Virus record (IMG/VR): IMGVR_UViG_3300035665_000001
Span: 186,001 to 250,000 of that record
Strand: one strand, 5' to 3'
Length of the DNA: 64,000 nt
The notes beneath the pieces were generated by a model that saw only the letters and a list, made by a program, of their open reading frames with translations, was not told the DNA's origin and searched no databases. Positions 13,074-44,798 of the stretch are shown piece after piece. The stretch's first letter is position 1; each line of letters starts with the position of its first letter. The translations under genes and the position numbers were made by a program.

Positions 13074-14204
13074 ATGAAAACTAAAAATTATCATTATGTT
13101 TACAAAATTACAAATCATAATCCAGTAGATTCACGTAAGTTCTATATTGGTGTTAGAACAACGAAAGGGCGATTACCAGAAGATGATATTAATTATATGG
13201 GTTCATCAGATACATTAACCGCTGCAATTAAAACCCAAGGAAAAAAATATTTTTCTAAAGAAATTTTGTCAGTATGGCAATCAAAGGATGATGCATATGC
13301 TGAAGAAATAAGATTACATGAATTGTATGATGTTTGTAGAAACATGGAATATTATAATAATGCTAACCAAACGAGCACTAAATTTTGTACGGATGGTAGG
13401 GTTGTAGTGTTTGATAAGAACACGGGCAAAACAAAAAGTGTAACAAAAGAAGAATTTCAAACTGTTACTGATTATGTTGGTGTTAAAACAGGTATGGTTT
13501 CCGTAATGGATACTACCGATGGAGTATTTAAATCAGTGTCAAAGGAGGAATTTGAAAAATCCGAACATTATATTCATCCTGCAACTGGTAAAGTAACCGT
13601 GATTGATACCACCGATGGTTTAGTTAAACATGTGAACTGTACAGAATATAGAAGTTGTGAAAATTATGTTTCTATCGCTACTGGAACTGTAACGTGTTAT
13701 GATATTAGAGATGGAAAAAACAAACAAGTTTCTAAAGATGAATTTGATAATGCTGATAATTTAATCAGTTGTAATGCTGGAAAAGTTACTGTGCTTGATA
13801 CTCGTGATGGAATTAAGAAATCGGTAACTAAGGTAGAGTTTGATATTACCTCTCATTATGTCGGTGTTAAATCTGGTAGAGTTACCGCTTTCGATATTCG
13901 GGACAAAAAGTTTAAAACTGTTACGATTGAAGAATTTGCAAATGATGATAATTATGTGAAAGGTAATTCCAAAAAAGTTGTTATTTTTGATAATAATGAT
14001 AATGTGGTTTTTGTATCTTATGGCAATTTTGAAACTTTTTGTAAAAAACATAAATTGCCGTGCTTTGTATTTAGAATGTCATATCGTAATAATGGCAGTC
14101 CAATCTATCAAAATTTAAGAGGCGTAACAAAAGCAAAGATATTTAAAAATGGAAACTACAAATATATCGGTTGGTATGCTAAAATTAGTGATGATACAAC
14201 TTAA
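13074..14204 (+). CDS. GIY-YIG (Seg-like) homing endonuclease with six 32-aa repeats
   Basis: YHYVYKITN..KFYIGVR..YMGSS..KEIL..EIRLH..YYN; then six units of G(K/R)V(T/S)xxDxxDGxxKxVxxxEF. Confidence 0.85.
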   Translation: MKTKNYHYVYKITNHNPVDSRKFYIGVRTTKGRLPEDDINYMGSSDTLTAAIKTQGKKYFSKEILSVWQSKDDAYAEEIRLHELYDVCRNMEYYNNANQTSTKFCTDGRVVVFDKNTGKTKSVTKEEFQTVTDYVGVKTGMVSVMDTTDGVFKSVSKEEFEKSEHYIHPATGKVTVIDTTDGLVKHVNCTEYRSCENYVSIATGTVTCYDIRDGKNKQVSKDEFDNADNLISCNAGKVTVLDTRDGIKKSVTKVEFDITSHYVGVKSGRVTAFDIRDKKFKTVTIEEFANDDNYVKGNSKKVVIFDNNDNVVFVSYGNFETFCKKHKLPCFVFRMSYRNNGSPIYQNLRGVTKAKIFKNGNYKYIGWYAKISDDTT

Positions 14205-15511
14205 AAAACAGAAGGGAGAATATCCCATTTATCCATATCGGAGTCAGGATCATAATCATCATCCTCATCATATTCTACAACAGATGAACCATTTTGTGCC
14301 ATTCTGGCGTAGTATTCTCTTTCCTGTTTCTTTGCTTCTTCAATTAATTTTAGTTCTTCCTGTTTTTGTTGTTCTAATCGCAAAGTTTCTTTTTCTACTC
14401 GTTCTTTATATAATTTCGCAGGATCAATTTCTTCTTTATTGGTGTTGATAATTTTTTCATCTTTTTTAGTAATCAACATATTATCAACAGAAAAATCACC
14501 CATCGCGTAGTTTGCGAATTCATTAAGAAGATAATATACCATTAAGAATGAACAGGTGACTCTATCGTCAGTATAACCAGATTTAGCACAATACGCCCCA
14601 CCAGCTGTTCTAATAAATCCATATAATTCCTCAATAAATCTTCCATCTCGAATTACCATTTTGTCGTACTCAACCAAATTTTTAAATTGTAATGCTAGTT
14701 TATTTTTAAGAGTTGGGGTTATGTGTAATCCAGGTTTACCCTTAATATCATAGAAGATAGGCATTTCAAGATTTTCGATTGCCTTTTCAGTTTGGGTTAA
14801 AATTTGAGCTAATCCCTCACCAATACCATTACGTTCAAAGATAATAAGTGCTTCATTTGGTTCATACTGCCATCTTGTTCGCATGTAATCCTGTAACCAT
14901 AATAATTTTTCAAATAGTACTGATGCATCAGCAAATTCATCGACAAAAGAGGCGATTTCATAAACCTTATGTGGTGCTATTTCCCAAATTTGTAAACAAC
15001 TACTATTATTACCACCTGCGGATGGGTCAATAGTTACCACTAACAAACCATCATCGTGCTCCAATTTATCTTTAAAAATATTAAAACCATTAACATCCTC
15101 CTCAAGAATTTCAGGTATTTGGTAAAAATCTAAAATATCTGTAGAAATTAATGAAAGTTCGAAAGTGATGAAAGCACAATTATGGGTTTTTAATGAATTA
15201 GCCAATAAAAAACTGTGCTCATCGTTTTCAACCTCAATAATATCAAACATTTTGGTAAAATTGTGAATTTCATTGATTTCCTCCACCTCACACAAACCCG
15301 TTTCGGTTTTTAAATCAAACCCCACTAATAAATCTTTTGCTTTTATTAACAGGTTATTTGATGTCCAAAATAAATGTTCACCAGAACATTTTACCGAAAT
15401 ATCATTGCTTAATTTTATTTCAAAAAACGAATTATGTTCAGATGATGCTATTCCTGCAAACGCTTTGTAACCTTCAGGAGTTTTTATTTTAAATCTATTA
15501 TTTTTTACCAT
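14201..15511 (-). CDS. terL: Large terminase C-terminal fragment: split-intein C-half (111 aa) plus RNase H-fold nuclease domain
   Basis: IKTPEGYKAFAGI..CSGEHLF..FDIIEVENDEHSFLLANSLKTHN|CAF, then gp17-like TIDPSAGG, IFERNGIGEGL, GYTDDRV; ends in a coiled-coil/acidic tail. Confidence 0.88.
   Translation of the reverse strand: MVKNNRFKIKTPEGYKAFAGIASSEHNSFFEIKLSNDISVKCSGEHLFWTSNNLLIKAKDLLVGFDLKTETGLCEVEEINEIHNFTKMFDIIEVENDEHSFLLANSLKTHNCAFITFELSLISTDILDFYQIPEILEEDVNGFNIFKDKLEHDDGLLVVTIDPSAGGNNSSCLQIWEIAPHKVYEIASFVDEFADASVLFEKLLWLQDYMRTRWQYEPNEALIIFERNGIGEGLAQILTQTEKAIENLEMPIFYDIKGKPGLHITPTLKNKLALQFKNLVEYDKMVIRDGRFIEELYGFIRTAGGAYCAKSGYTDDRVTCSFLMVYYLLNEFANYAMGDFSVDNMLITKKDEKIINTNKEEIDPAKLYKERVEKETLRLEQQKQEELKLIEEAKKQEREYYARMAQNGSSVVEYDEDDDYDPDSDMDKWDILPSVF
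15179..15511 (-). other. Atypically split intein, C-half (TerL intein 2)
   Basis: Contains block B (SGEH), block F and terminal HN followed by +1 Cys; lacks block A. Confidence 0.85.
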
Positions 15512-15615
15512 GAATTTTTTCTCAAATTAATGTAATTAAACTATATTTATGAATTTTTTGTTGAAACAATTACAAAAATAAATAAATATAATAAAATTAT
15601 AATTTGGAGAAAAAA

Positions 15616-16422
15616 ATGACGGTAGTAAACCAGAGTGATATTAAAAGTGGTTCAAAACCTGTTAGGGATTTATTTTCATTACTACCAAAAGACAGAGATT
15701 ATGGTTGGTTGTGTACGCAAACCTATTCAAATGACGATCTTGTCGAAATTTCATATATTGTGAATAATATTGAGAGTCCACATATCAAGAATTTTGGTTT
15801 TTTTAACTTACTGATACAGAGTCAAGCTGGACCATTCAATTCTGCTGTTTTTGCTGTCTATTTAAAAGAGTTAAATGCTGTAGATGTTCTAATTCATTTG
15901 ATCGCAAAAACCCCTAACTTATCAGAAAAAGAAAAAATTGCTTGGTTGGAAAACCCAAATATTATATCTAAAGGTTTTATGACAATGGTTAGATATTTTT
16001 TTGATCATGGTGTTGCCGCACAATGTGGAATTTCTAATACTAAATCACCATATAATGTGATATTTGCAAAAGAAATAATGGTATATGGTTATAGTACAAA
16101 TCATGATCGATTAAAAGACTTTTTATTTGGTTCGTTAAATTCTTTGACTCCTGCTGAATTAGATTCATGGTATCGTGAAACTCTTTTTATGATTTGTGGT
16201 GAGGATAATTATGTAGCAGTTGATGTGTTGGGTGATTATCCAAATACACCCGAAAATTTGTTGGATGACTATTTTTCACATACTCAAAACACTGCGTTGA
16301 AATTGAAATTGGCTTTGCATAAAAATTTCCCAGTAAAAAAAATATATCCTATATGGAAAGAAACTGAAAATACCATATTGTATGATAAGTTACCAGCGTC
16401 AATAAAAAGCTTGATATTCTAA
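15616..16422 (+). CDS. LRV/HEAT-like repeat protein with C-terminal tag
   Basis: AKTPNLSEKE, GDYPNTPENLL, ALHKNFPVKK repeats; GGAG RBS; ends KLPASIKSLIF. Confidence 0.6.
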   Translation: MTVVNQSDIKSGSKPVRDLFSLLPKDRDYGWLCTQTYSNDDLVEISYIVNNIESPHIKNFGFFNLLIQSQAGPFNSAVFAVYLKELNAVDVLIHLIAKTPNLSEKEKIAWLENPNIISKGFMTMVRYFFDHGVAAQCGISNTKSPYNVIFAKEIMVYGYSTNHDRLKDFLFGSLNSLTPAELDSWYRETLFMICGEDNYVAVDVLGDYPNTPENLLDDYFSHTQNTALKLKLALHKNFPVKKIYPIWKETENTILYDKLPASIKSLIF

Positions 16423-16425
16423 GAG

Positions 16426-16459
16426 TGAGTTGGTTGATAGATTGTTTTCAACCAACTCA
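16426..16459. terminator. Inverted repeat between convergent genes
   Basis: TGAGTTGGTTGA / TCAACCAACTCA, 12-bp stem. Confidence 0.65.
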
Positions 16460-16466
16460 TTTGTAA

Positions 16467-16982
16467 TTATACCAACTTACTCAATAGGTAAGTTTTATGT
16501 TTATTATTGTTAAAAACAAACATCACCTCATTTTTTTCTGTATTTTCATACAATTTAAATTTCTTGTAAATTGAAATTAATTGAGTAATTGGTGCAGTCA
16601 TAGTAACCATATTCACTCTTACATTTCTATCATAACAGAACGCTTGTAGGTCAGTAATATTTTTACCAAAACTTCCAAGATAATTGAAATTTTTAAGGTC
16701 GATTGCTTTTTCTGGTGAGGTTCCTAGAGTTTGATCTGTTACGGGAACTAATTTGTTTCGAGTTAATCTGAATGTCCCTTCAAAATCAATTTCTTCGGGA
16801 TTGTCATATACAATCATTGTTTTATCATTAATGCACGTCAAATATTCATTACATGCTGATGTATAAAGATTTGTTTTTTCACGTTGTAAATTTTTAAAAC
16901 TTTTTAACACTTCACGGTTAACATTGTCAATAATATCTAGGTTTAATGCTTCCACAACTATACTCATCGGTAAATTCTCCAT
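16467..16982 (-). CDS. Hypothetical protein
   Basis: ORF 16467-17048 of the track; start adjusted to MENLPM. Confidence 0.55.
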   Translation of the reverse strand: MENLPMSIVVEALNLDIIDNVNREVLKSFKNLQREKTNLYTSACNEYLTCINDKTMIVYDNPEEIDFEGTFRLTRNKLVPVTDQTLGTSPEKAIDLKNFNYLGSFGKNITDLQAFCYDRNVRVNMVTMTAPITQLISIYKKFKLYENTEKNEVMFVFNNNKHKTYLLSKLV

Positions 16983-17065
16983 TTTTAATTTATTTTGAAT
17001 TATTTTACAAAAAAATAAAAATTTAGTATAATTCTTTTGGAATACCAATAAATACGGAGAATTCT

Positions 17066-17827
17066 ATGTTCATATCATGGTTAGAAAAAAAATGTTATCC
17101 AAACCATCCAATATCTTTGACCGCTGAAGAATGGGTTGAATGGGAAAAGGTAGAAAAATCAAAACCAATTTGTAATTTTTGTGTTAATGTAGTTCCTCAA
17201 TGGTGTAAAAAATATATTACTAGACCCCTATCAAATGCACAATATTGGTTTTTATATCGGTTTGTTAAAAAACACAAATATCATTTAATTGATACTGGAT
17301 TGTTACCAGGCTATTATGATGTGGATACTCGTATTTTTCATGGTGTTTTTAATTTGATGAAAGAATTTTGTGAGGATGAACAACCTAGAAATGATTGGAT
17401 GTGGGAATCTGATAAAAATTCTAAAAAATTTGTTCCTGGATTTAATGCAGCGATTGAATCTTTTAAATGGCAAAAAGAATTGGTTTATACCTCGGATGAT
17501 GTCTGGGATATTGAAAATCAACATCTTATTGGTACACCACAACCACAGGCTTTAGTTGCTAAAGAATTAGAAGAAATCTATATTTGGTGGGTGGTAACTA
17601 GACCAAATCGAGAAGATCCATATAAAAAATTTCAGGATTTTTATTTTGAAAATCTTTTGCGAGAAAAAGGTTCCAGTATGTCACTATTATGTGCGAGATC
17701 ACCAGAAGAAGAAGAAAAAAGAGCATTGGTAGTTGCACAACGAGATGAATTAGAAAAGCAGTATAAAGATGAGGATGAAAATATGCTACTTAGATTGATA
17801 AAAATTAGACATTCTTTATGGACATGA
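17066..17827 (+). CDS. Phage hypothetical protein
   Basis: 253-aa Trp-rich ORF; GGAG RBS; TTTACA-17-TATAAT promoter at 17004-17032. Confidence 0.7.
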   Translation: MFISWLEKKCYPNHPISLTAEEWVEWEKVEKSKPICNFCVNVVPQWCKKYITRPLSNAQYWFLYRFVKKHKYHLIDTGLLPGYYDVDTRIFHGVFNLMKEFCEDEQPRNDWMWESDKNSKKFVPGFNAAIESFKWQKELVYTSDDVWDIENQHLIGTPQPQALVAKELEEIYIWWVVTRPNREDPYKKFQDFYFENLLREKGSSMSLLCARSPEEEEKRALVVAQRDELEKQYKDEDENMLLRLIKIRHSLWT

Positions 17828-17924
17828 TGTTATTTGGGATTGTTATGTGAAATATTATTTTAGTTGTCGACATTCAATAACATATAAATATTCTGTTTTT
17901 AAAAAATTAATCGAGATTACGAAA

Positions 17925-18365
17925 ATGAAAAAAATATTATTACTGGCAATTTTATCATCGATACACCAAAATGCTCATGCTTTAAAAGTTATAGATAATG
18001 TAGTTGTCCCTATGGGTGCTGGAATTGCAGGAGCAATGATTTATCAGTCAATTAGTAGTGATGATAATCGGAGAAATAACAATCAGTATAACTCAGATTA
18101 TAATCGAAATACTTATCAATATAATAATACCTACCAATACAACAATAGTTATGGTCGAACCAATGATTATCAGTATAATAGAAACCACTACGATAACCAA
18201 TATGATTATAACAGTGATTACAGTAGAAGTAGAGATAATGAAAGAGAATATGAAGAACGACAAATTGAAAGAGATATTATTAGAGAAGAAAAAAGAAAAT
18301 TGCGATACTGTAAATATTTGTTAAATACACAACAACTTAATATGTATCGTTATAAATGTCAGTAG
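17925..18365 (+). CDS. Secreted protein with Asn/Tyr/Gln-rich low-complexity domain
   Basis: Signal peptide MKKILLLAILSSIHQNAHA, glycine-zipper-like GAGIAGAM, NNQYNSDYNRNTYQYNNTYQYNN tract; TATAAATA at 17883-17890. Confidence 0.6.
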   Translation: MKKILLLAILSSIHQNAHALKVIDNVVVPMGAGIAGAMIYQSISSDDNRRNNNQYNSDYNRNTYQYNNTYQYNNSYGRTNDYQYNRNHYDNQYDYNSDYSRSRDNEREYEERQIERDIIREEKRKLRYCKYLLNTQQLNMYRYKCQ

Positions 18366-18647
18366 TTGAAACACGAATCAGATATTGTGTTAATTTTTTT
18401 GGAGTTAATTATGAGTAAATTTATTTTACCGTGTTGTATTGGTTATATATTGATTAATTTGAATCATGTGATTTTTGGATATTCAGTTCATGATGATGTA
18501 ATACAGTTAATCAGTCATATGTTTTTACTGTTTTCGGAAATTTTTGTTATTGAATCCCTGATAAAATGGTTTAATAGACATGAAAATGTTGTATAATAAT
18601 ATTGAAAGTTACAACCATTAACACTAATTTTTTGAGTAGATAACACA

Positions 18648-19625
18648 ATGCATACAGCAACAGACATCAAAAATTTAAAAGAAATTAAAGATTTTCTTGA
18701 TGAAAACGGATTAGAATATAGCACTGAATATGATAACTTTTGCCTCCATTATGGTAATCCAGATGGTAAAAGGTCTTATGAAATTTGTTATGTTGCATCA
18801 CACGAATACCCTATATCATACAAACAATATGGCATTGCAGGAGTGGATGCCGCATATTTTTATGAATTGTCTCATAAAGCAGAACACGAACAAAATTCCT
18901 TTAAATGTTGGGTTAAAGATTATGAATGGGCTGATGATAGAAAAAGAGAAGTGTTAAAATCTTACTTTATGCACGCAGCTGGTAAAACACGTTATAAATT
19001 TTATGCAAGGGATTGTGAAGTTCGTGAAGTTTCTACTCCAGTTGCTAGAAAATTTGAAAGTGAAAATTGTTTTTATGGTAAACGAGGTGCTTCTTTAAAT
19101 TTAGGTCTTTATTTGCGAAAAGAAAAAAATGGATTACCAGCTGGTACATTGATGATGATTTATACTTTTGGTAAAAACTTTTTTGGAAAGGATGATTCTA
19201 TTGAAGTTTTGCGTGTAGGAACTAAAAAGTTTTCGAATGTTGTTGGTGGAGCATCTAAGTTACTAAAGCATTTCATTTATAATTACCCAGTGTTGCGAAT
19301 CGGTGCAGTTGATGTTCCCGTAACCGTTTTGAAATTCTATAGTGATTATGACCATAACATTGGTAACAGTATGGACGAATTAGGATTTAAGTTTGTAAGT
19401 TATTCGGGTGGTGGATTTATGAATTACTGGGTTGCTACTGGAGAAGTAAAAGGTAGACAACCAAACAAACACAAATGGGTTATGGAACAAATGAAAGAAG
19501 GAAAAGTATTGGCAATTCCAAATGCTGGGGTAAAAACCTTTGTAATGTATGTTGATAGATCAACTTTACCACCACCTCCAGAAAAAATTATCGATCCTAA
19601 TGTTGGACCAGAAGTTCTTTTCTAA
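18648..19625 (+). CDS. Hef-like homing-endonuclease-related protein with GNAT-like C-domain
   Basis: FYARDCEVREV, LGLY, YTFG, VVGGASKLLKHF, YSD, GF pattern recalled from phage Hef-like proteins. Confidence 0.55.
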   Translation: MHTATDIKNLKEIKDFLDENGLEYSTEYDNFCLHYGNPDGKRSYEICYVASHEYPISYKQYGIAGVDAAYFYELSHKAEHEQNSFKCWVKDYEWADDRKREVLKSYFMHAAGKTRYKFYARDCEVREVSTPVARKFESENCFYGKRGASLNLGLYLRKEKNGLPAGTLMMIYTFGKNFFGKDDSIEVLRVGTKKFSNVVGGASKLLKHFIYNYPVLRIGAVDVPVTVLKFYSDYDHNIGNSMDELGFKFVSYSGGGFMNYWVATGEVKGRQPNKHKWVMEQMKEGKVLAIPNAGVKTFVMYVDRSTLPPPPEKIIDPNVGPEVLF

Positions 19626-19656
19626 AAAAATTATTTTGTGTACTAAAGGATAAAAA

Positions 19657-20718
19657 ATGAAAATACAAGAACGATTAGAAAATGAAATTTTATTTATAAA
19701 ATTTGGAAATATTAATTTAGAGCAGTTTATTAGGATGGTTGGTTTGAAAATAGATGGTATTGCTAGTGTTGAAATTAGTAGTACCACTAATACGATAATT
19801 AGTGTGCATAAATCAAATGCACGTAGATTGGAGGTGTGTTTTGAATTAACATTAAATCTCTATAATAATTTTTTCTTAAATTGTGATAGAGATATTAAAA
19901 CTGCTTTAAAGAAACTATCAAAACATTCTAAAAAATATGATATTGAATTACTGGAAGTTAAAGATAGTTTTGCAGATGGTGAAAATAGATTTATCAGTTT
20001 TAAATTTAAACCACCCATAAAACAAATATTCCCATTAAGTACAAGAAAAAAAGAGATTTCAACTGATACAATCCGAGATATTATTGGGTTGAAAAAACAT
20101 TTAGATTATTCGGTTATTTCTGATAGACCTGTGAATAATGGGTGGCAATACATTTTCCATGTGTATGATATTGATAAATTTAGTTTACATTATATTGATA
20201 TGGAATTACAACGATCAAAAATATCAAAAGATTATTACATTAAAGTATTTTGTGATAAGTATGCTGATATTAGGGTAGTGCTTCAAAATAAAAAATCTAA
20301 ACAGTTTTTTAAAAATTGCATTCCCCAAATCACTATTCCACATTTAACTGCTATTCTTAGAACTAACGATTATGCTTTAAGTGGTGCATTTACTTACCAG
20401 GATGAATATGCCGCTGGGTTAAAATTTACTAATTTGTTTTTACCAACTATAAATGAATTTTTGGATTTTGATTATGTAGTCAACGAAATAAAACCTTATT
20501 TTAAAGAATATTATCATATTGAAACGAATGTAAGTGAAAATATGATTCGGTTTGTGGATAAAAGTGTTGATGCTAGATACAACCCCGAAGATTTGAGTGA
20601 TTCAATTATTCGTATCGTTCTTGAAGATGTAAAAGTAGAAAAGTTGTCGATACATGATGCAACGGAAATTATAAAATTGCATTTTGAACAAATAATCGAT
20701 AAATTGGTTACATCATAA
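19657..20718 (+). CDS. Hypothetical protein
   Basis: 353-aa ORF with AAGGA RBS. Confidence 0.65.
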   Translation: MKIQERLENEILFIKFGNINLEQFIRMVGLKIDGIASVEISSTTNTIISVHKSNARRLEVCFELTLNLYNNFFLNCDRDIKTALKKLSKHSKKYDIELLEVKDSFADGENRFISFKFKPPIKQIFPLSTRKKEISTDTIRDIIGLKKHLDYSVISDRPVNNGWQYIFHVYDIDKFSLHYIDMELQRSKISKDYYIKVFCDKYADIRVVLQNKKSKQFFKNCIPQITIPHLTAILRTNDYALSGAFTYQDEYAAGLKFTNLFLPTINEFLDFDYVVNEIKPYFKEYYHIETNVSENMIRFVDKSVDARYNPEDLSDSIIRIVLEDVKVEKLSIHDATEIIKLHFEQIIDKLVTS

Positions 20719-21240
20719 CACTACACACATTATTGTTGGGGTTACTAAAATGGTTGATATTATACATGCTACTGAAGCTCGGAAGGTTACTAATATAGCG
20801 GTATCTGTATTAGAAAATCAGTTACAAGTTTTAGAGAATAACAAATGGTTGAAAGATTTAGAAATTATTAATACCGATTTGGATAACATCATCACCAATA
20901 TTATTAATGATGCCATAAAAAATGCAGCAAATGAGATGAAATATAGTGTTGAGTTTATAATTTCTACCGAAGATATTTCTTATGCTGATAAGTATTTTTA
21001 TTATACTCATATCATTCTTTCAGAATATTCTGAAAGAATGGTGGAAACCTTTGTTGATAAACTTAAAACTATTATTGAAGGTGGTGGTTATCATTGGCAG
21101 ATTGCAAAAAATAATATATTAGATTTGTGTCCAAAATTACAGGTTTCAAGTTATGTAGAATATTATTTTTTATCAGTTGACTGGTTAGTTGATGATGATA
21201 TTTACAATTGATGTTCTAATCCCTATTAGAGGAAAAAACT

Positions 21241-21720
21241 ATGAATACACCAAATGAAGTTGAACTAGATGTTAATTATGATGTTGATCAAGATGAATGG
21301 GATAAATTACTCCAGAATCAAATTGATTTATTGGATGATGATGGTTTTTATGATTTTGATTGCGATGAATGGGTTGTTAGTATGGGCGAATATGTTCCAG
21401 ATAAATGGGTTATTGTAAATATTTCTAATCCTACGGTCACCATTAGAAAGGTTTTAGGGTCTTGGTATGGCGGTTTTAATGGTGGTTGGAGTTATCGATT
21501 GAGTAGCGGTATCACTCAAACTGTTGATATGGGAGATTATTTTGAAATTCATAATGCATCTGGTAGTGTATATAAATGTTATAAATTCTGTCATGGTATG
21601 AGCTTATTTACAGCTGGGATATATGATGATTTTGTTAAAAACATTCCTGATGATACAGCTATATTCATCGAGGATAACCATGAACAGGATTATTTCGGGC
21701 ATTCTAACCTTCTACCATAG
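21241..21720 (+). CDS. Phage hypothetical protein
   Basis: PDKWVIV..KVLGSWYGG..SYRLSSGIT..NASGSVYKC pattern; GAGG RBS. Confidence 0.6.
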   Translation: MNTPNEVELDVNYDVDQDEWDKLLQNQIDLLDDDGFYDFDCDEWVVSMGEYVPDKWVIVNISNPTVTIRKVLGSWYGGFNGGWSYRLSSGITQTVDMGDYFEIHNASGSVYKCYKFCHGMSLFTAGIYDDFVKNIPDDTAIFIEDNHEQDYFGHSNLLP

Positions 21721-30842: not shown

Positions 30843-30913
30843 TGGACTAACGTAATAAATTATAATATAATATATTTTTTAAAATAACTTTTACAAACTA
30901 AAAGGATACTATT

Positions 30914-31852: not shown

Positions 31853-31867
31853 AAAGATAATATTAAA

Positions 31868-34453: not shown

Positions 34454-34482
34454 TTGACAAACTTTACACAGAATGGTATAAT
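34454..34482 (+). promoter_or_regulatory. Consensus sigma70-type early promoter
   Basis: TTGACA-17 nt-TATAAT, with TG at the extended -10 position. Confidence 0.75.
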
Positions 34483-35382: not shown

Positions 35383-35451
35383 TTAACAAACCATATTAAC
35401 TAGTGATTATTTTTAGTTGATGGTAGAGAATAATTAAAGAGATAACTTACG

Positions 35452-35742: not shown

Positions 35743-35764
35743 TTTTTTTATCCATACTCTGTCG

Positions 35765-35880
35765 GAAAACCCAGTCCCTTTAGGGGTACGGTATAAATCA
35801 ACTGGGAAAATATCTTAAAGAAAAATAATTATTTTGTGGAGAACTACCTGTCCATCCTTAACCTAAAGTCCGAGGTCTTA
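35765..35880. mobile_element. Remnant IS200/IS605-type end hairpins
   Basis: GAAAACCCAGTCCCTTTAGGGG..TCAAC on +, plus a 44/50 copy of the 4591-4640 left-end-like sequence. Confidence 0.55.
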
Positions 35881-35909
35881 TGTCAGTAATGTTAAAAAAG
35901 GAAAAGAAA

Positions 35910-36557
35910 ATGAATATCAAAGAAGAAATCGATAATTTAAAAAAATTTATTGGGATTCATGAAAAAAGATTAGCTAAATTGGAACAACAATTATTAGAAT
36001 CAGAATCACGATTTGAAATAGCACCGAAGCTATTAGAAAAAGAAAATGTAAATTGGAATGAGGCTGTTAAATACTGTGAACTGTTGGGTAATGGATGGCG
36101 TTTACCATCTAAAGACGAATTAAAAATAATTCTTACATTGGAAAATGACTTAAACACAAACTATAGATATTGGTCAACAGCTACTAGGGGTAATAAAGAT
36201 CTTATTGCTTTTAATCAAAGTTTGTATAGAGGATATCGAGTTAGACCTATTAGAGATATTATTAAACCAAAATCATGTTTACCGTTCGAAGTTGCTGATA
36301 AATCAACTGAAAATAGATTATCATGGAATGAGGCTGTAAAATATGTTAAAACATTAGGTAAAGGTTGGAGATTGCCAACTAAACATGAATTAACTTTAAT
36401 CTATATTTCTGATAATGATTTTGACAAGGAATACTATTGGTCTAGTACAGAGTTTAATTCTACAGACGCTTGGGGGAAGGTCTTCGACGGTGGGTATGAG
36501 ACCACCAGCAATAAGGCTGGTAGTAACTATGTTAGAGCTATCCGTCCAATTCTTTAA
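35910..36557 (+). CDS. Coiled-coil leader plus two Lcl/DUF1566-like domains (VR-E 36435-36545)
   Basis: Two GWRLP..EL..YW..VR units; the terminal VR has mostly NNY codons. Confidence 0.82.
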   Translation: MNIKEEIDNLKKFIGIHEKRLAKLEQQLLESESRFEIAPKLLEKENVNWNEAVKYCELLGNGWRLPSKDELKIILTLENDLNTNYRYWSTATRGNKDLIAFNQSLYRGYRVRPIRDIIKPKSCLPFEVADKSTENRLSWNEAVKYVKTLGKGWRLPTKHELTLIYISDNDFDKEYYWSSTEFNSTDAWGKVFDGGYETTSNKAGSNYVRAIRPIL

Positions 36558-36645
36558 TTATTAGATCATTTGTAAGAGGAATGAAAATGAAATCTATCAA
36601 TACAACTAAATTGTACACCATTAATCGTTAAACTAATACAATATG

Positions 36646-36674
36646 TTGACAAACGCACAATGGTGTGTTATAAT
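36646..36674 (+). promoter_or_regulatory. Consensus sigma70-type early promoter
   Basis: TTGACA-17 nt-TATAAT. Confidence 0.75.
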
Positions 36675-37867
36675 ATACACAGTGAATAACTTTTACAAAT
36701 TAAAAGGACCAAATCAAATGAAAATTTTCAAACAAACAACGAGTATTATTAGTATTATTTTTGCATTAGCTGTATGTTTATTTTCCGTATCAGCGTTTAT
36801 ACATGCGTTATTTGTAATTCCAGCTTTTAGAATGTACTTAGGCCAGATGATTGTTGTCTGTGGAGCCACTTATCTATTTTTCAAGGGTATATTTGAGCTA
36901 TTGTCAATGTATATTGATTATGATCAACACCGAAAATAATGGTAGACCATCGATTACATAATATGTGAATTAACTAACTTTTCAACTAAGGGGTGTGTTA
37001 ATGAACAACATTGATGAGGATATTTTTGATGAATACTATCTAAGTCGGAGTAGATGTACACAATAATCCACTAATTAAAATGTTTGAGGATGAAAAAAAT
37101 GTTTGAACCTGCAAAAGAAATGTTACATAAAGCAAATGAAAATTTTAAAGCACTTTTTGAAGAGAAGATTACTGAAGTTGGTCCATGTATTCAAGAAGCA
37201 CTATTTGATGTGGCTGCTAAGGGAGAGTATAAAACTACCATCATATTTACTGGTCGTTCACATCGCAATCCAATTGGTTGGATACCAAACAACTATGTCC
37301 ACTATAATGAAGAAGATACAATGCTCAGTGCATTAACTGAGTTCTTTTGTGAACAATTGACTAATGATGGTTATGGTGTAGTTACCCAAATGGTTAAAAA
37401 TGATATAATTGTGATAACGATTTTTTTTAATCCTATGAAGACAAATAAAATGGGTACAAATTTACATGCAGTAGGTAATGGTTACTAAGACGGATGAGTA
37501 AACGGAACAACAAATTATCTTTGAATTGTATCAAACGTCAACTAATGTTACCTGGGATATATTAACCTCAATTCAGAACAAACATATTTTGAGTGGGTGA
37601 TTACGTTTAGGATAAAGATTATGCCCCCAGTTTACGGAGATGATGATTATTTCTGGTAGTATCCACCAATATGGTATAATATAATTTTTGAAGGTGATAT
37701 GCGCATTTAATAGAGTTAGATAATTTTAGTACTAAATGATGAGAATATTGGATATATGGTTGAATTATATTTAACAAATTCCATCAGAGTTAGAGCTATT
37801 TAATATGGTGTGTCACATGGTGAGTGGGATTAGAGATAGATTATCAATTATACTGAGTAATATAAAA

Positions 37868-38644
37868 ATGAATATTAATGAAGAAATTGCTGAAGTAAAA
37901 TCAATTATTGCAGTTCAAGAAAAACGATTAGCTGAATTAGAAAAGCAATCAAATGAATTAACATTTGAAATAGCTCCGGAGTTATTAGAAAAAGGCAATG
38001 TGGATTGGTATGAGGCGATTAACTATTGTAAATTGTTAGGTAATGGTTGGCGACTTCCATCTCGGGATGAACTGAAAATAATTTATAACTCTGATAATGA
38101 CTTGAACGAAAACAGTACGTATTGGTCAGCTACAAGGGGTAATAATGATCGTCTTGCTTTTAATCAAAGTATGTATAATGGGGATCAATTTATTTCGGAT
38201 AAAAGTTTTAGTTCCAATGAATATCGAGTTAGACCGATAAGGGATATTATTAGACCAAATTTATCGTTTGAAGTAGTTAATAAATCGACTGAGATTCAAG
38301 TGGAATGGGATAGTGTGGATAAGCATTGTAAACCGTTAGGTTTATCAACTACCGATGAATTACCGTTTGAAATTTCTCCTAAATCATGTGAAAAACAATG
38401 CAATTGGTATGAAGCATTTGAATATGCTGAATTTGTGGATCAAGGTTGGAGAATACCCACAATAGATGATTTAAAGCTTATTTTTCAAAACCGTAAAGGT
38501 ACAAATATGGAGCTTGGTGTTTATTGGACAAAAAATGTATATGGGCATACCGCTTTAGGTATTAATATGCTGAATGGATTACAACAACCGTATGGTAAAG
38601 AAATGGGTAACAACTACATTAGGCTAATTCGGAATAAAAAATGA
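37868..38644 (+). CDS. Coiled-coil leader plus two Lcl/DUF1566-like domains and a truncated middle unit
   Basis: First domain is closely paralogous to 35910-36250; FEVVNKSTEIQVEWDSV is a truncated unit; last domain is divergent. Confidence 0.8.
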   Translation: MNINEEIAEVKSIIAVQEKRLAELEKQSNELTFEIAPELLEKGNVDWYEAINYCKLLGNGWRLPSRDELKIIYNSDNDLNENSTYWSATRGNNDRLAFNQSMYNGDQFISDKSFSSNEYRVRPIRDIIRPNLSFEVVNKSTEIQVEWDSVDKHCKPLGLSTTDELPFEISPKSCEKQCNWYEAFEYAEFVDQGWRIPTIDDLKLIFQNRKGTNMELGVYWTKNVYGHTALGINMLNGLQQPYGKEMGNNYIRLIRNKK

Positions 38645-39153
38645 ATATAAAGAAAGAGACGATGTACACATTTGATGGGTTGAAAAACGCATGTCGAAAT
38701 GAAGTAATTGATTTTATTGAAGAATTGATGAAAGAAATTGACTTTCAACCTACTTGGTATGACCATAAGGAATCTGATTCTGATTTGCCTCGAGTACCAG
38801 TAACACCATCTGGGACATATATGTATGCCTTAAAAGTAATTAACAGTAGATGTAAAGAGTGGGAACATTTAATAATGGAGGAACCCAAATATTCGTATTT
38901 GTATGCATTAAACGTAATTGGTGGGAGATGGGAAGAGGCAGAACCAATTATTATGACTGATCCACAGTATGCATATTCGTATGCCATTGAGGTGATTAAA
39001 GGTAGATGGGAGCTAGGAGAGACTGTTATTAAAGAAGATTCCTATTATGCCTATTTGTATGCCCGAGATATACTTAAAGAGAGGTGGTGGGATGCTGAAC
39101 CTTATATAATGGAAACATCATGGTGGAAAAGGTATATACGTGATCTTGGATAA
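38641..39153 (+). CDS. Repeat protein (about 24-aa YAxxVIxGRWxEAEPxI units)
   Basis: YALNVIGGRWEEAEPII, YAIEVIKGRWELGETVI, YARDILKERWWDAEPYI. Confidence 0.7.
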   Translation: MNIKKETMYTFDGLKNACRNEVIDFIEELMKEIDFQPTWYDHKESDSDLPRVPVTPSGTYMYALKVINSRCKEWEHLIMEEPKYSYLYALNVIGGRWEEAEPIIMTDPQYAYSYAIEVIKGRWELGETVIKEDSYYAYLYARDILKERWWDAEPYIMETSWWKRYIRDLG

Positions 39154-39602
39154 TTGATTCAAAATTATCTTTAGTAAATGTAGAAAACGAATAGGTTGAA
39201 TTTAGTGATCATACTGTAATAGGGTTTAAAATGAGAAATGTGCAAGAAATAGCTGAAACTTTGATTAGCGAAGGTGTATTAGAATGGGTAGACAGTAATG
39301 AATTACCGTTTTATGAGATATTTGATGTATCTGATAATTATATTTTAGAACTTGATTACCTTGTTAATGATGATTATCCAATTAGATATAGAATTTGCTA
39401 TGTCAATATATCCGATGAGAAAATTGATTTTATCGGGTGTGAAGATGATAATATGCGATTACCACTCGATGGGTTGTTGGATGAATCAATTATGCATATA
39501 TATCAAAAAATATCAATTTAATATGTTGAGTGTTACAATCAATAGTTAAATTAGTCTTCAAAATTTGATGTCTACTGATAGACAAAAAAGAGGTATTGAA
39601 AA

Positions 39603-39833
39603 GTGTTTACTCACGAACAGGATATTGATAACGCATTGTTTGATATTGACCAAATGCACAAAAAATTAGCTGATCACGTTTGTTGGGTGTCAAATGTTAT
39701 GCGTGATCTTGATAATACGGAAATTGAGAAATTAAAAACACTGGTCACTGAGTCAGGTGCAATTGAAAAATTAAAACAAGGTATTACTGATTTTGAAGCA
39801 ATGTTGGATCATCGAGGAATTAAAAATGAATGA
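39603..39833 (+). CDS. Hypothetical protein, paralog of 26882-27106
   Basis: GTG start with GAGG RBS; protein and upstream DNA resemble the 26882 locus. Confidence 0.6.
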   Translation: MFTHEQDIDNALFDIDQMHKKLADHVCWVSNVMRDLDNTEIEKLKTLVTESGAIEKLKQGITDFEAMLDHRGIKNE

Positions 39834-39954
39834 AAAAAGTTTAAAATCGACTGGTGTTCAACTCAGTAAATCCCACAAGAATTACATCAGCTACGTGCGT
39901 ACAGTAAGAGATCTCTAAACAGATAATAGAAACCATTTAACAAGGAAATCTATA

Positions 39955-40338
39955 ATGAATCACCAACCACCAATATCTATCACCAAAGAACACTATGACA
40001 ACAGAGATGTAATTTATTCGGATACATTGTTTGTGGTATGGATGCCAGATAATACCAGAAGAAAAACAATCGAACTAGCTATCAATGCAGTACGTTTATC
40101 TTGGCTTGATTTATCTTGGGCTAATTTAGCACATGACGATTTATCTGGGTTAGATTTATCGGGTTTGGATCTTTCTTATACTAATTTAACGTTTGCAAAT
40201 TTGTCAAATGCTAATCTAACCAATGCGAATTTATTTCAAGCAAGTTTACGTGGTGCTGATCTTACGAACACCATGATAAATAATACAAATCTTCAATATG
40301 CTGATTTAAGTTATACATTATTAAAAAATGACAGATAA
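39955..40338 (+). CDS. Pentapeptide-repeat protein
   Basis: ANLAH DDLSG LDLSG LDLSY TNLTF ANLSN ANLTN ANLFQ ASLRG ADLTN. Confidence 0.85.
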   Translation: MNHQPPISITKEHYDNRDVIYSDTLFVVWMPDNTRRKTIELAINAVRLSWLDLSWANLAHDDLSGLDLSGLDLSYTNLTFANLSNANLTNANLFQASLRGADLTNTMINNTNLQYADLSYTLLKNDR

Positions 40339-40362
40339 TTTTACAATTTTTTTAAAAATCTC

Positions 40363-40391
40363 TTGACACCTTGACTTGTTTAAGGTATAAT
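40363..40391 (+). promoter_or_regulatory. Consensus sigma70-type early promoter
   Basis: TTGACA-17 nt-TATAAT. Confidence 0.75.
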
Positions 40392-43300
40392 ATTACTATC
40401 AAATTATTATTAGAAATATTCAAAATATATGCATGAAAAAGTAAAACCATTTTTGCCTGTTTACACTAGACCACCAAATGTCTTTTTGCGATATGAAGAA
40501 ACAAGATTTGATGATGGATATGGGCATACAGGTATAGCTAGAACAGCATTCTTTTTAACTAAAAAGAAAGAAGAAATGTCAATGATTGCCCAAATTATTT
40601 GGGATAACTTATGAGGATTAAATAATGAATTTGTACTTGTTGGAACAAGAAGAAAATAGTGGTTATGATACTTATGATTCTATGGTAGTAGCAGCAGAAA
40701 CTGAAGATAAAGCCAGATTAATTCATCCAAATACTTGGTTAGATAATCCTTGGGATAGAACAAAATTTAATAGAGATTGGGCAACTTCTCCCGATCAAGT
40801 TTCTGTTAAGTTAATCGGAACAGCGGTAGAAGGAACAAAATCTGGTGTGATTTTATCATCATTTAATGCAGGTTAGATAAGGAAAGAATATGCCTTTTAA
40901 AAAACATAGAACTGATTGTATATCAGAGTATGCAAACACAATTGCAAAGTTGTCTGTAGAGTTGGCTGTTTTAGGTACAAACCGGGATGATGCTGTTAAA
41001 TGTACCACAAAATTGATTAGTACCCTATTGAATAAATTGATGTTGAGTCCAGGGGCAGTAGAGATTCTAAAACATGATTTAAAAAATAATGTTATTCCAC
41101 TGTATAATTCTACTATTAAAAATGAGAGTGAAAATCAATATCCTACACCTGTTAAACAAAAAAAGTTAACGGTGGATTTTAATTTCGATTTGGAGAGAAT
41201 GAAAGTTGCGGTTGAATCAAAAAAAATTGAGATTCCAAAACATGCTTTAGAAAGTTTTGAAGCTTTTGATGCCTGGTTGAATGATGATGAACTACCTAAA
41301 AAGCAAATTTGTCCACAGAAAGTAAATGGACATTGTCCACTACATAATTTGTTTTGTAAATATCCAGAATGTGAGAAAATCCCTTTAGGGATGGGTAATT
41401 GACAATCAACTTTTTGCAGAAATTATCAAATCATTGCACCACTGATAATAGTAAAAAAATTGTAATAATAGAAATCGTATTGGTTGCAGAGATGTCTAAA
41501 GATTCTCTAACTATCCAATCACTTTTTTGAGTAAAGGTAGGTATAATTATGAAAAATGCTAAAGCCGAAATTGTAGAAATTGTATCAAAAATTAATCCTG
41601 ATTTGGTTAGTCATGTTGATTTACTAAACATTGATAAGGCATGTTTTCAGTGTGGTCATTTTAACAAAAATTTAAAAGATGTAGATGTATATCGATGCTA
41701 TAATATTGGTACGTGTATATCGGCAACATTACATCCCGAAATCACTGATAAAATTTGGAGTGAATACACTGAAAATTTTTGGAAAGATGTTGATTGTGGT
41801 ATAATATAGGTGACAGATGAAAGTGTATGTGGTTTACTATACCGATGGTTTAGGGATGTCAGATCGTTTTTGTGGTGTGTTTGATTCTCCCGAATCATGT
41901 ATTACATTTATCGATCGTCAAGATTTTAGTTGGTATTATGATTGGTTTTCATCAAAAGTATTATCTAAAGATGATCTAACATTGGATGATGTTTAAAACT
42001 ATTATGGATTGTGGGTAAAAATGGCACAAATTGAAAACCCAGATTTAAAAATTTTTAAAGTTGTTTTAACAGAATATGAACGTGGCTGGGGATCTAAAAT
42101 CTGGGACACATTGTATTTTGATAATGAATTAGAAGCAAAAACATTTGCTACTGACTACAATCAACAAAATAATAGTGATTCTTATGTACCCGATTGGTAT
42201 GTTAGTGCGACTTATGAAGGTAAAGTAAGATAATGATGGTTGATTATGAAATATTATAACAGTAAGATAAGAGAGTTGGCTAATAAAACTGCGAATGAAA
42301 TAGCGGATCAATTTGCAATAGGTTATTTTGATGATCGTATGGTTGAATTACATTCTGACATTATAGAAAGAAATATGCTCACAATCGTGGATTTGTGCTC
42401 TCTAATAATATTAGAAGATGATAAGAAACAGGTTTCAATGTTTGATAAATTATTGAGAAATGATGCAGAGGAAATGCATAATCTTAGTAAAAAAATTAAA
42501 CTTTATTTTGGTGTGTTATAATGCATACATATATACAGAATATTGCCGATCAGGCTACCGAATATGCCAGTTTAAAGAAAAATTTGGTATGTGTTCAACT
42601 GCAAATGGTAATTAAACCGATGTTAAGAAAATTAAAATAACTATATTACATTAAAAAATAGTAATAACAGAATCTAATGGAAATAGGAATTAATATGCAT
42701 GAAAACGTAAAACGAATTATTGATCAGTGGGATGAAATTTTAGATGATGAAGCTGATTTTGATGTCGAGTTAGCTAAATTGGTGGAAATAGTTGTTTTTG
42801 ATGTTATCAACAATATCAATGATGTTAAATATGAATCTGGAAAAAGTCTTTCTAAAATTATTGAAACTGTGATTAAAAACCATTATGGTTTAGAATATGA
42901 ACATTAAAAATAGATATTTGTTGGTTTACCATTTTGAGTTGAATTTATGAATGAAAAAATTAAAGAAATTGCAACTAGGTGTAATTGGGTAGATTTAACT
43001 GGCGACGATAACTGGATCAACATTGAAGCTAATAAACGTGGTTATTTCACTGAAAAAGATTTAGAAAAGTTTGCAAGAGAGATAGTAAAAGAATGTATTG
43101 GTGTGTATGTGACCATTGCAAATGGTAATTATGTTGAGGATACCGATGATTACATTGTTGCGATTGGAAAAACATTTTTAACTGAGCGAAAAGTGGAAGA
43201 ATGATATTATGGTCACCAAAATTCAAAAATTGATAAGTAAGTTTGATGATAATTTTTTAGATAAAAATGATTCATTCGAACAAATGATGGAAAAATTTGC

Positions 43301-43746
43301 TACATTGGTGATTTCTGATGTACTATATGTAGTAAACGATGAATTACAATATGAAATTGGTTTTGGGTTAGCAAAAACAATAAACCATGCAGTAAATAAA
43401 CATTATGAAATAAAGGATGATTAGAGTCCACACAAAACATAACTGATATGGTGTTATATTGATTATATTATCAGTTGGTTATTTAGAAAAACATTTTGAG
43501 AAAAAACATATGACAGATAATAATGTAGTGAAAAAAAAAGTTGTTACATACCCAATTATTGGTATTTTTCCAAAAACTGGAAACATAGTATTATTTTCAT
43601 CTTTGACCACTGGAACTTTTTTAAAATGTTCAGAGAGTTGTACACTTAAAGTGGGAACAACCATTTCTAATTTTGCTCGCAATTGGATTCCCTATCCAGG
43701 GATGTTAAACATGTCAAACGATATATTATCCAGGTAAAGAGTAATT

Positions 43747-43780
43747 AAGAAACCCCATATTTCAATTTGTGGGGTTTCTT
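43747..43780 (+). terminator. Intrinsic terminator ending the small-ORF array
   Basis: AAGAAACCCCA / TGGGGTTTCTT, 11-bp stem right after the last small ORF. Confidence 0.7.
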
Positions 43781-43965
43781 CCACAAAAAATTGACACAAC
43801 CGTATATTTTCTTCAGAGTACACATTATGTCACTCAATTCAACAAGCCGGTAATCCTCAAAAATTTGTTAAAAATTCCAACACACGGGTATCTCACTACC
43901 CATAAGTTGACAAAAAATTGGTATTAATTAATTACGTTGACTTTTTTCATCACCTTGCTAAAAAT

Positions 43966-43973
43966 TATAAATA
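43966..43973 (+). promoter_or_regulatory. T4-like late promoter upstream of the terminase middle fragment
   Basis: Exact TATAAATA 36 nt upstream of ATG 44010. Confidence 0.5.
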
Positions 43974-44009
43974 GAATAACATCAGCAAAAAACTATTTAG
44001 AGTAAGATA

Positions 44010-44333
44010 ATGAAAGATATTAATGAGTGGGAGATTTTAACTCCAGAGGGATGGCGTGATTTTTCGGGAATTATCCAATTAGATAAGAAAGTTATCACTA
44101 TTGAATTTGATAATGGTAAACAGTTAACAGGTAGTGAAACACATCGAATTTTTTCTAAAATTGGAATACAAGAATTTAACACTTTAATGGTTGGTGATGA
44201 AATCAAAACCAATGATGGTTGGACTGTGGTAACTAAAATTTCAGATGTAAAACAAACTCAGAAAGTATATGATTTGGTAGAAGTAAAATCAGCTAACCAT
44301 CAATATTATACCAATGGTTTTGTTTCAAAAAAT
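44010..44333 (+). other. Atypically split intein C-half (TerL intein 1); partner N-half not in window
   Basis: Blocks B (SETH), F and G ending SKN, with +1 Cys. Confidence 0.82.
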
Positions 44334-44798
44334 TGTGATGAGATTGCGTTTATTCCCAACAGAATTCAGGAAGAATTTATGTCTGGCACAACACCGGCTC
44401 TTTCTGCTACAAAAGGAAAAATGTTAATTACCTCAACGCCCAATGGTTCGAGAGATTTATTTGCGAAACTTTGGTTTGGATCCGGTATGACATGGGATAA
44501 AAAACAATATACATACGTCAGAAAAAATGAACCAAAAAACCTTTTTAGTCCATTATTTGTACCTTTTTGGATTGACCCAGAAAAAAACACTGATGAATGG
44601 ATTCACAGAGAAAAGATGACTCTCGATAGCCCAATAGCATGGAAAATAGAGTTTGAATGTATGTATCCAGATACGTTGATTGATGTATATGATGAAAAAA
44701 CTAAAAATTATCAAACAATAACTATAGAAGATATGTATCGAATGATACTTCGAGATGAAATTGAGAATAAAGTTATTATTGATGAATCTGATAATTAG
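44010..44798 (+). CDS. terL: Large terminase middle fragment: IntC(108 aa) - ATPase Walker B/motif C region - IntN(46 aa)
   Basis: ILTPEGWRDFSGI..SETH..YDL..YTNGFVSKN|CDEIAFIP..LITSTPNG..IEFE|CMYPDTLIDV..ITIEDMY. Confidence 0.9.
   Translation: MKDINEWEILTPEGWRDFSGIIQLDKKVITIEFDNGKQLTGSETHRIFSKIGIQEFNTLMVGDEIKTNDGWTVVTKISDVKQTQKVYDLVEVKSANHQYYTNGFVSKNCDEIAFIPNRIQEEFMSGTTPALSATKGKMLITSTPNGSRDLFAKLWFGSGMTWDKKQYTYVRKNEPKNLFSPLFVPFWIDPEKNTDEWIHREKMTLDSPIAWKIEFECMYPDTLIDVYDEKTKNYQTITIEDMYRMILRDEIENKVIIDESDN
44658..44798 (+). other. Atypically split intein N-half (TerL intein 2), 46 aa
   Basis: CMYPDTLIDV block A plus ITIEDMY helix, then stop. Confidence 0.85.

Follow-up and report, generated by a model that had tools for sequence, protein, structure and literature searches.

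How can a phage obtain one large terminase subunit (TerL) from genes that lie tens of kilobases apart and on opposite strands? This question is raised by a stretch of 64,000 nucleotides, called the window in what follows, which corresponds to bases 186001-250000, in the same orientation, of IMGVR_UViG_3300035665_000001 (Ga0334984_0000005), a 306,333-bp contig of an uncultured phage from a short-read metagenome assembly; the placement was verified base for base against overlapping loci. The initial annotation of the window, made from its sequence alone, proposed that TerL is encoded in at least three pieces, two of them 29 kb apart on opposite strands, and that these are joined by protein trans-splicing. 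Our analysis indicates, with a probability that we put at roughly 80%, that TerL of this phage is encoded by four separate genes, the products of which would be joined by trans-splicing through three atypical split inteins. The earlier count holds as a minimum, but the actual number of pieces is four, and both missing ones lie just outside the window.

The part of the contig that was read directly extends from position 159,460 to 250,000 (about 30% of its length), and the remainder was probed by peptide-pattern scans. We refer to the four pieces, in the order of the protein, as N1, N2, M and C, and to the three interruptions as sites a, b and c; at each site the N-terminal intein half (IntN) ends one piece and the C-terminal half (IntC) opens the next, and the TerL segments are the exteins. 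Negative coordinates count residues to the left of window position 1. The open reading frames (ORFs) and their parts are as follows.

Contig 184957-185298 (window -1043 to -702), minus strand: TerL piece N1 (P0192), 113 aa
Contig 169358-170110 (window -16642 to -15890; L015:9614-10366), minus strand: TerL piece N2, 250 aa, covering Walker A to Walker B
44010-44798, plus strand: TerL piece M, an ORF of 262 aa with IntC-b, extein 3 and IntN-c, assigned by PHROG, homologues and PDB profiles
44010-44333, plus strand: IntC-b, the long C-terminal half of the split intein in Walker B, 108 aa (residues 1-108), ending in FVSKN with Cys at +1
44334-44657, plus strand: extein 3, with the Walker B CDE, TSTPNG and the ATPase subdomain up to KIEFE, 108 aa (residues 109-216)
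44658-44795, plus strand: IntN-c, the short N-terminal half at the ATPase-nuclease linker, starting with CMYPDT, 46 aa (residues 217-262)
14201-15511, minus strand: TerL piece C, an ORF of 436 aa with IntC-c, the nuclease and a C-terminal tail, assigned by homologues, AlphaFold2 (AF2) modelling and Foldseek
15179-15511, minus strand: IntC-c, the long C-terminal half, 111 aa (residues 1-111), ending in KTHN with Cys at +1
14204-15178, minus strand: extein 4, a gp17-type RNase H-fold nuclease of 325 aa, from Cys112 (CAFITF) through a charged tail

The two pieces within the window

Both ORFs inside the window are real, and their motifs are those that had been attributed to them. In particular, piece M opens with an IntC, continues with an ATPase segment carrying CDEIAF and ITSTPNG, and closes with a short IntN after IEFE; piece C opens with a long IntC ending in THN, which is followed by CAF and by a nuclease of the gp17 type. 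Pfam is nearly silent on both, and the assignments came from PHROG, from structure prediction and from searches of the PDB with profiles built from 50 M-type proteins and 55 C-type proteins (for N2, the single sequence was used).

Piece M matched the large terminase family of PHROG at 1.9e-10, and its extein 3 could be aligned both to residues 253-299 of T4 gp17, through the M-family profile, and to residues 181-272 of TerL of Pseudomonas phage PA5oct. The IntC-b region of the same profile found the Cat intein C-terminal chain CatC (6dsl_B, 3.8e-14), gp41-1 (7.8e-9) and VidaL (3.4e-6). The short IntN-c gave a weak match (0.043) to CatN (6dsl_A, a chain of 33 aa) at profile positions 214-246, and a score of E 3.8e-14 with a hidden Markov model (HMM) of IntN sequences. 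About 55 full-length homologues of the M type, sharing 55-67% identity, were collected; among 50,697 phage records the best matches to M belong to Campylobacter Fletchervirus phages, and a megablast of window positions 40-50 kb against these records returned no match.

Piece C matched the large terminase family of PHROG at 1.3e-5 and has full-length homologues in about 85 clusters. Its family profile retrieved from the PDB CatC (2.7e-12), the RB49 gp17 nuclease (1.2e-8) and T4 gp17 (2e-7 to 3e-7), with T4 gp17 residues 352-566 aligned to profile positions 110-338. The AF2 model (mean predicted local distance difference test score 80.3) resembles, according to Foldseek, T4 gp17 (3cpe, 1e-12) and the RB49 nuclease (3c6a, template modelling (TM) score 0.83), as well as chain B of the Cat intein 6dsl (3.6e-8, TM score 0.76). 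Since a BLASTP comparison of C with PA5oct TerL gave no match at 1e-2, the assignment of its nuclease rests on the profile and fold searches.

The two pieces to the left of the window

Regular-expression and tblastn searches confirmed the earlier statement that the piece with Walker A is absent from the window. An ORF at 11707-12396 on the minus strand, noticed for a Walker A pattern (RRQGKT) 17 residues from its end, was considered as an N-terminal piece and rejected: Pfam reported neither a terminase nor an intein signal in it, and tblastn found no match to the TerL N-terminal region. The search for a Walker A piece ending in a short IntN did succeed outside the window, where it returned N1 and, in addition, the further piece N2.

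Piece N1 was identified when protein clusters were searched with a query made of the first 82 residues of a relative. It consists of an 81-aa extein, which ends with ASRQMSK inside Walker A, and a 32-aa IntN-a starting with CVKGNS. Full-length homologues of this type occur in about 35 clusters, and the junction SRQMSK|C is present in all 28 that were aligned; a pattern scan with the single N1 sequence returned the contig of the query alone. Piece N2 was found by probing with the Walker A-to-B segment of M homologues that lack the first intein (P0052 and P0055). It is composed of a long IntC-a ending in GILSHN, an 88-aa extein running from TTIGAF to KSLKFVY, and a 33-aa IntN-b starting with CLDGKT.

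One terminase in four exteins

The order along the contig is N2, N1 and C on the minus strand and M on the plus strand, over a span of 61.4 kb, with partner genes 15, 30 and 60 kb apart. When the exteins are placed in the order N1, N2, M and C, they cover a contiguous TerL with neither gaps nor overlaps, their lengths of 81, 88, 108 and 325 residues adding up to 602 aa. On PA5oct TerL, N1 corresponds to residues 68-93, N2 to 94-181 and M to 181-272; on T4 gp17, N2 corresponds to residues 166-254 and M to 253-299, and C begins at about 352. The features of a T4 gp17-type terminase follow one another in the expected order, namely, Walker A (SRQMSK|T) across N1 and N2, CDE and TSTPNG in M, and the RNase H-fold nuclease in C. 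Instead of being encoded by a single contiguous gene, as in a gp17-type terminase, they are distributed over four ORFs at four loci.

Site a falls inside Walker A, between positions equivalent to K166 and T167 of T4 gp17, and site b in the Walker B strand, between the equivalents of Y253 and I254, just before D255-E256. Alleles devoid of an intein show the uninterrupted sequence at both: SRQMSKTT at site a in P0055, P0176 and the related contig L016, and VYCDEM at site b in P0055 and P0052. Site c lies in the hinge between ATPase and nuclease, at about 353/354 of T4 gp17, and coincides with the split point of gp17A and gp17B in Aeromonas phage PX29, both halves of which resemble the halves found here. 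The alignments with T4 gp17 thus bear out the earlier placement of the IEFE-CAF junction at the ATPase-nuclease linker. Since each of the three junctions interrupts either the hinge between the domains or a catalytic motif, a single piece would be expected to be inactive.

Class and conservation of the three inteins

The split with a short N-terminal and a long C-terminal half, already noticed in the window, is found at all three sites, with IntN of 32, 33 and 46 aa and IntC of 117, 108 and 111 aa at sites a, b and c, respectively. Judging from their sequences, all three inteins are members of the atypical GOS/AceL/Cat-TerL class, in which a short N-terminal half is combined with a C-terminal half of the Hint fold. 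The evidence for this fold comprises the matches to CatC, gp41-1 and VidaL; CatC ranks first among the PDB matches of the M and C families and second, behind VidaL, among those of N2.

The residues on which splicing would depend are conserved to the same extent as those of the terminase. Each site has Cys at position 1 of the intein, and the +1 residue of the following extein is Thr at site a and Cys at sites b and c. In the M family the terminal Asn of IntC-b, the +1 Cys, the Asp-Glu of Walker B, and Cys1 and the Thr at +6 of IntN-c are each present in 48 of the 48 aligned sequences, and the block B His of IntC-b in 47. In the C family H46 (block B), H110, N111 and C112 are invariant (79/79), and the TerL catalytic residues do not vary across the M, C and N1 homologues. 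Such a pattern is what would be expected of splicing-competent inteins under selection, and not of relics or docking tags.

In contig 159,460-250,000, an HMM scan detected exactly three short IntNs, in N1, N2 and M, and four long IntCs, in N2, M and C and in one unrelated RecA-like ORF. IntN-a and IntN-b are 38% identical and IntC-a and IntC-b 45%; the site-c halves are more distant (22-33%), and IntC-c is homologous to the IntC of PX29 gp17B.

The RecA-family gene is fractured as well, with ORFs at window positions 55747-56856 and 57946-58614 on the plus strand. The former begins with a long atypical IntC that ends in SSHN before SGKSF (P-loop), and continues with a RecA core (Pfam RecA, 1.8e-11) and a conventional long IntN (Hint_2, 6e-10). 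The start of the latter, on which Pfam is silent, shows a weak partial match to the C-terminal end of the IntC model (E 0.004) and is possibly a short conventional IntC. A piece with a short IntN matching the RecA-like IntC was not found in the 90 kb read.

Arrangement in other assemblies and in relatives

The exact M protein, with the same flanks (upstream genes, downstream endonuclease, a 169-aa gene and ATP-binding cassette (ABC) transporter genes), is found again in four other assemblies, which stem from four samples and in which the contigs range from 10.8 to 228 kb: Logan SRR11637951, JGI 3300059473 (176 kb), ENA ERZ28008831 (228 kb) and Logan SRR11069770. Piece C, too, occurs as the exact protein with its flanks in four further assemblies, two contigs of which (38 and 34 kb) also hold N1, and an identical N2 is found on a 140-kb contig from a different metagenome. 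In none of the further assemblies does C stand right after the endonuclease gene that begins at 44807 downstream of M, as a misassembly would have implied. As four or five independent assemblies reproduce the flanks for each of the pieces M, C and N1, a misassembly is untenable.

The related contig IMGVR 3300026521_000003 (L016; 290 kb, 59-77% identical) carries an N piece, a 711-aa Vsr-like endonuclease, a 435-aa ORF and M in co-linear order, which is the layout of a classical fractured gene, and its M (at about 279.4 kb, plus strand) and C (at about 197 kb, minus strand) are 82 kb apart. On a 261-kb NCBI metagenome contig (L005), an N piece devoid of the site-a intein lies 2.5 kb upstream of M, and three other relatives have a stand-alone C, no further TerL piece being called within 10 kb of it. 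Phages at a greater distance (about 25-48% segment identity) encode TerL in three or four co-linear pieces within 2 to 5 kb, with endonuclease genes between the pieces in some and none in others. The proposal that the halves had been relocated and inverted thus gains support from the co-linear order in distant relatives and from the closer relative in which the N piece and M are still co-linear and C lies 82 kb away. A scattered, multiply split state thus recurs across a clade of large phages, with a variable number of splits.

Two of these relatives deserve a separate remark. In L005 a group I intron lies inside the N-terminal extein of TerL (L005:6644-6942; Rfam RF00028, 70 bits, E 1.6e-17), and it follows from this match that its TerL holds an intron in addition to split inteins. 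In the more distant L017 (6514-7458 on the plus strand, and 8124-13038), N1, a 317-aa ORF, N2, a 401-aa ORF and a fused M and C are co-linear; the two intervening ORFs are presumed homing endonucleases, and the inteins are inserted 3 to 5 residues away from the positions used in the phage of the window. Just upstream, an ORF begins with the C-terminal half of an intein and, as judged by eye, may be a C-terminal piece of a polymerase.

Alternative explanations

Could the arrangement result from a chimeric contig, in which C truly follows the 44807 endonuclease? The short-read origin of the assembly would allow it, but the exact flanks of M and of C in four further assemblies each, the two C contigs that also hold N1, and the stand-alone C in divergent relatives make this extremely improbable. 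It is also very unlikely that the four pieces are decaying relics of a phage whose intact terminase gene lies elsewhere in its 306-kb genome. A few peptide patterns were used to probe the contig outside positions 159,460-250,000, which leaves some room for such a gene; however, all four ORFs are intact, dozens of homologues at 50-70% identity show no variation in the catalytic and splice residues, the same piece architectures occur in many genomes, and the pattern scans, a weak search for an intact terL, turned up a single M-like and a single C-like locus on the contig. A different hypothesis is that the inteins dock without splicing, or splice in part, so that the motor is a non-covalent complex of pieces. 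Split-intein halves do bind tightly, and IntC-b has a penultimate Lys in place of the usual His (Lys in 5 and His in 39 of 48 homologues). Docking, however, does not require the Cys1, terminal Asn and +1 nucleophile that are strictly conserved at three sites, unspliced inteins in the P-loop and Walker B should block ATP hydrolysis, and relatives of this class splice in vitro (PMC11766414); we therefore regard docking without full splicing as unlikely.

The halves might also be paired differently, for instance, IntN-c with the RecA-like IntC at 55.7 kb, or cross-splice on purpose to give alternative products, cyclised N2 or M among them. Four long IntCs face three short IntNs in the 90 kb read and the halves of sites a and b are alike, but the continuity of the exteins matches the intein-less alleles exactly at both of these sites, both site-c halves are homologous to the gp17A/gp17B pair of PX29, and of the four IntCs the RecA-like one diverges most. 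Taken together, a different set of partners has little probability. Four TerL genes joined through three split inteins thus remain, in our opinion, the explanation to be preferred. Several points nonetheless weigh against it: splicing is a prediction from the sequence; IntC-b departs from the usual penultimate His; the promoter-like boxes described below are weak as evidence; there is a slight chance of a divergent intact terL elsewhere, as 70% of the contig was probed weakly; and mis-pairing is conceivable, including self-cyclisation of N2 or M, because the a and b halves are similar and because the IntN fragments of GOS and AceL have been reported to be interchangeable (PMC11766414). Cross-reaction would lead to cyclisation of N2 or M or to skipping of a piece, since both have the topology IntC-extein-IntN.

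Proposed assembly and its meaning

From the observed gene structure, homology, conservation and arrangement we infer the splicing, the order of joining and the specificity of the pairs. Each of the four TerL genes, provided with its own start codon, would be translated separately, and each short IntN would then dock into its own IntC, itself folded only in part, a mode of association that has been described for Cat and AceL-TerL (PMC11766414). Three trans-splicing reactions, involving Cys1, the terminal Asn and the +1 residues Thr, Cys and Cys, would join the exteins into a TerL of 602 aa. As to the history, split inteins and free-standing homing endonucleases would have come first and produced a co-linear fractured gene, such as that seen in distant relatives; genome rearrangement would subsequently have scattered the pieces, TerL having likely been invaded repeatedly. 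The scattering would be tolerated because the joining occurs at the protein level.

It is possible to hypothesize that fragmentation is adaptive and not a tolerated load of parasites, acting as a late-assembly checkpoint, in the evasion of Avs, or in modular exchange between co-infecting phages; we consider this unlikely. According to this hypothesis, three orthogonal splicings may yield full-length TerL only when all four genes are expressed; the complete TerL fold, a ligand of Avs-type STAND sensors, could be kept from forming early; and endonuclease-linked pieces could be swapped between co-infecting phages as independent modules. In connection with these sensors, PDB entry 8dgc is among the fold matches of C.

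Whether adaptive or tolerated, the arrangement is of broader interest. In nature, split inteins are known to occur one junction at a time, usually with adjacent halves, and here an essential and highly conserved motor appears to depend on three junctions and four unlinked genes, which shows to what extent joining at the protein level can release the order of viral genes from selection. The three co-resident inteins are presumably mutually orthogonal in vivo, since N2 and M would otherwise cyclise, and their IntN tags of about 32-46 aa, with dozens of natural variants per site, are candidates for multi-fragment ligation and semisynthesis. A caution also arises for annotation: TerL, a standard marker for phylogeny, completeness and binning, appears in such phages as four hypothetical ORFs, and the N half in the Campylobacter phage CP30A is so annotated in GenBank.

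Neighbouring genes and promoter-like boxes

Endonuclease genes adjoin three of the pieces, and promoter-like boxes precede two of them within the window.

44807-45970, plus strand: Vsr/DUF559-like free-standing endonuclease, directly after IntN-c (phrog_22677, 5e-23; phrog endonuclease, 1.6e-4)
13074-14204, plus strand: SegE-like GIY-YIG endonuclease, convergent with C and overlapping its stop codon (Pfam SegE_GIY-YIG, 1.2e-7; phrog_314 homing endonuclease, 6e-18)
L015:10373-11608, minus strand: second SegE-like GIY-YIG endonuclease, abutting the 3' end of N2, in the same position as the first one at C
43966-43973, plus strand: TATAAATA box, T4-late-promoter-like, 36 nt before the ATG of M
15550-15544, minus strand: cATAAATA box, matching at 7 of 8 positions, 33 nt upstream of the start codon of C

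The gene at 44807-45970 is a probable homing endonuclease, as suggested by its PHROG matches. Its Pfam matches (MTES_1575, 0.0045; DUF559, 0.053) are both below the cut-off, no sequence match was found in the PDB, and it resembles the 711-aa endonuclease of L016 weakly (E 0.013), in the nuclease core only. It is missing in L005, where M directly precedes an ABC-transporter gene, and the GIY-YIG gene next to C is missing in L009 and L011. Because they are missing at the same positions in relatives, the endonucleases adjoining M and C are recent additions. Both SegE-like endonucleases, which by eye look like paralogues, end in a long array of repeats of about 30 aa (G.VTVIDTRDG..K.VS..E), and the arrays presumably form a modular DNA-binding region.

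The boxes that had been reported upstream of M and C are present. An exact TATAAATA precedes M and N1, and versions with one mismatch precede C and N2. The window contains 9 copies, compared to 19.1 +/- 4.1 in shuffled sequences, and 4 of the 9 lie, by our reading, within 40 nt upstream of an ORF start (9944 on the minus strand, and 10844, 44010 and 48063 on the plus strand). Together, depletion and placement are consistent with a genuine promoter element that the sequence avoids at other positions, an indication that is suggestive only.

Further genes were noticed in the surroundings. Directly downstream of M, positions 46593-49976 on the plus strand encode a complete ABC uptake system, with permease (BPD_transp_1), ATPase (ABC_tran) and substrate-binding protein (SBP_bac_6/11). 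The system is also conserved among relatives; in one of them, genes for P-II and for a response regulator are found close by. Upstream of M, two genes on the plus strand (35880-36557 and 37805-38644) have Lcl_C and FGE-sulfatase-like domains according to precomputed Pfam data. The left end of the window (1-962, plus strand) holds a gene for a Rep3-type replication initiator (Pfam Rep3_N and Rep3_C), and four copies of an iteron, CCCAATAGAAAATGA, are located upstream of it, about 300-410 bp to the left of the window (L019:9600-9710). These iterons lie between the rep gene and N1 and resemble a plasmid-style origin in a jumbo phage.

Comparison with known systems

Inteins of this class, split TerL and fractured genes have been described before (PMC2677866; PMC11766414; PDB 6dsl); the combination of three such inteins in one protein, with partner genes scattered on both strands and the state recurring across a clade, was not found described in the roughly 8.4 million papers searched, and neither was a natural multi-split TerL or a dispersal of TerL pieces in a phage. 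In fractured genes, ORFs with split-intein halves flank a free-standing endonuclease, co-linearly and at one locus, and the examples include a terminase with a long C-terminal half (Dassa et al. 2009, PMC2677866). The likeness with the present case consists in the separate split-intein ORFs, the adjoining GIY-YIG or Vsr-like endonucleases and the phage-derived metagenomic origin. The co-linear layout of N-terminal half, endonuclease and C-terminal half, found in the relatives L016 and L017, is instead lost here: endonucleases abut M, C and N2, but M lies on the strand opposite to the other three. The closest inteins, GOS-TerL, AceL-TerL and Cat (PDB 6dsl), the last an engineered consensus, share the host protein and the type of split, with IntN of about 25-37 aa and IntC of about 104-122 aa (PMC2677866; PMC11766414). 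They have been described as single splits, and the GOS-TerL halves flank a free-standing endonuclease, whereas three inteins with distant partners are present here.

Among cultured phages, Aeromonas phage PX29 (GU396103) has a split intein at the same linker, with a short IntN after QQEH in gp17A and an IntC homologous to IntC-c in gp17B, and its record labels them as putative N-intein and C-intein. It differs in having one split, adjacent and overlapping genes, and a GIY-YIG domain fused into gp17B.

The Campylobacter Fletchervirus phages CP30A, F367 and NCTC12673 have an atypically split TerL in two pieces. In CP30A the N half is a product annotated as a hypothetical protein (AFR52368.1; JX569801.1, 49486-50202 on the minus strand; L025:487-1203), which ends with LIFIDE followed by a 31-aa IntN; this IntN is 55% identical to IntN-b, and the insertion is three residues later (IDE|CAF). 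The C half (74590-75918, plus strand) is 24 kb from the N half and on the opposite strand. The 443-aa terminase of the Fletchervirus phages begins with an IntC, labelled in F367 as an intein C-terminal splicing region. No description of the CP30A arrangement was found in the literature; one paper links Campylobacter phage terminase with inteins, in a different group and with adjacent halves. The claim that TerL halves are dispersed and inverted in the present phage therefore holds, but not as a peculiarity of it, since cultured Fletchervirus genomes show the same.

A cellular counterpart is offered by DnaE of Synechocystis, where dnaE-n and dnaE-c lie far apart on opposite strands and the split site is canonical. 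Cyanobacterial split DnaE and the TerL described here are alike in that an essential enzyme is obtained, or in our case would be obtained, from distant loci on opposite strands by trans-splicing. The cyanobacterial system differs in its canonical split, with a long N-terminal and a short C-terminal half, in its single junction and in its location in a cellular genome.

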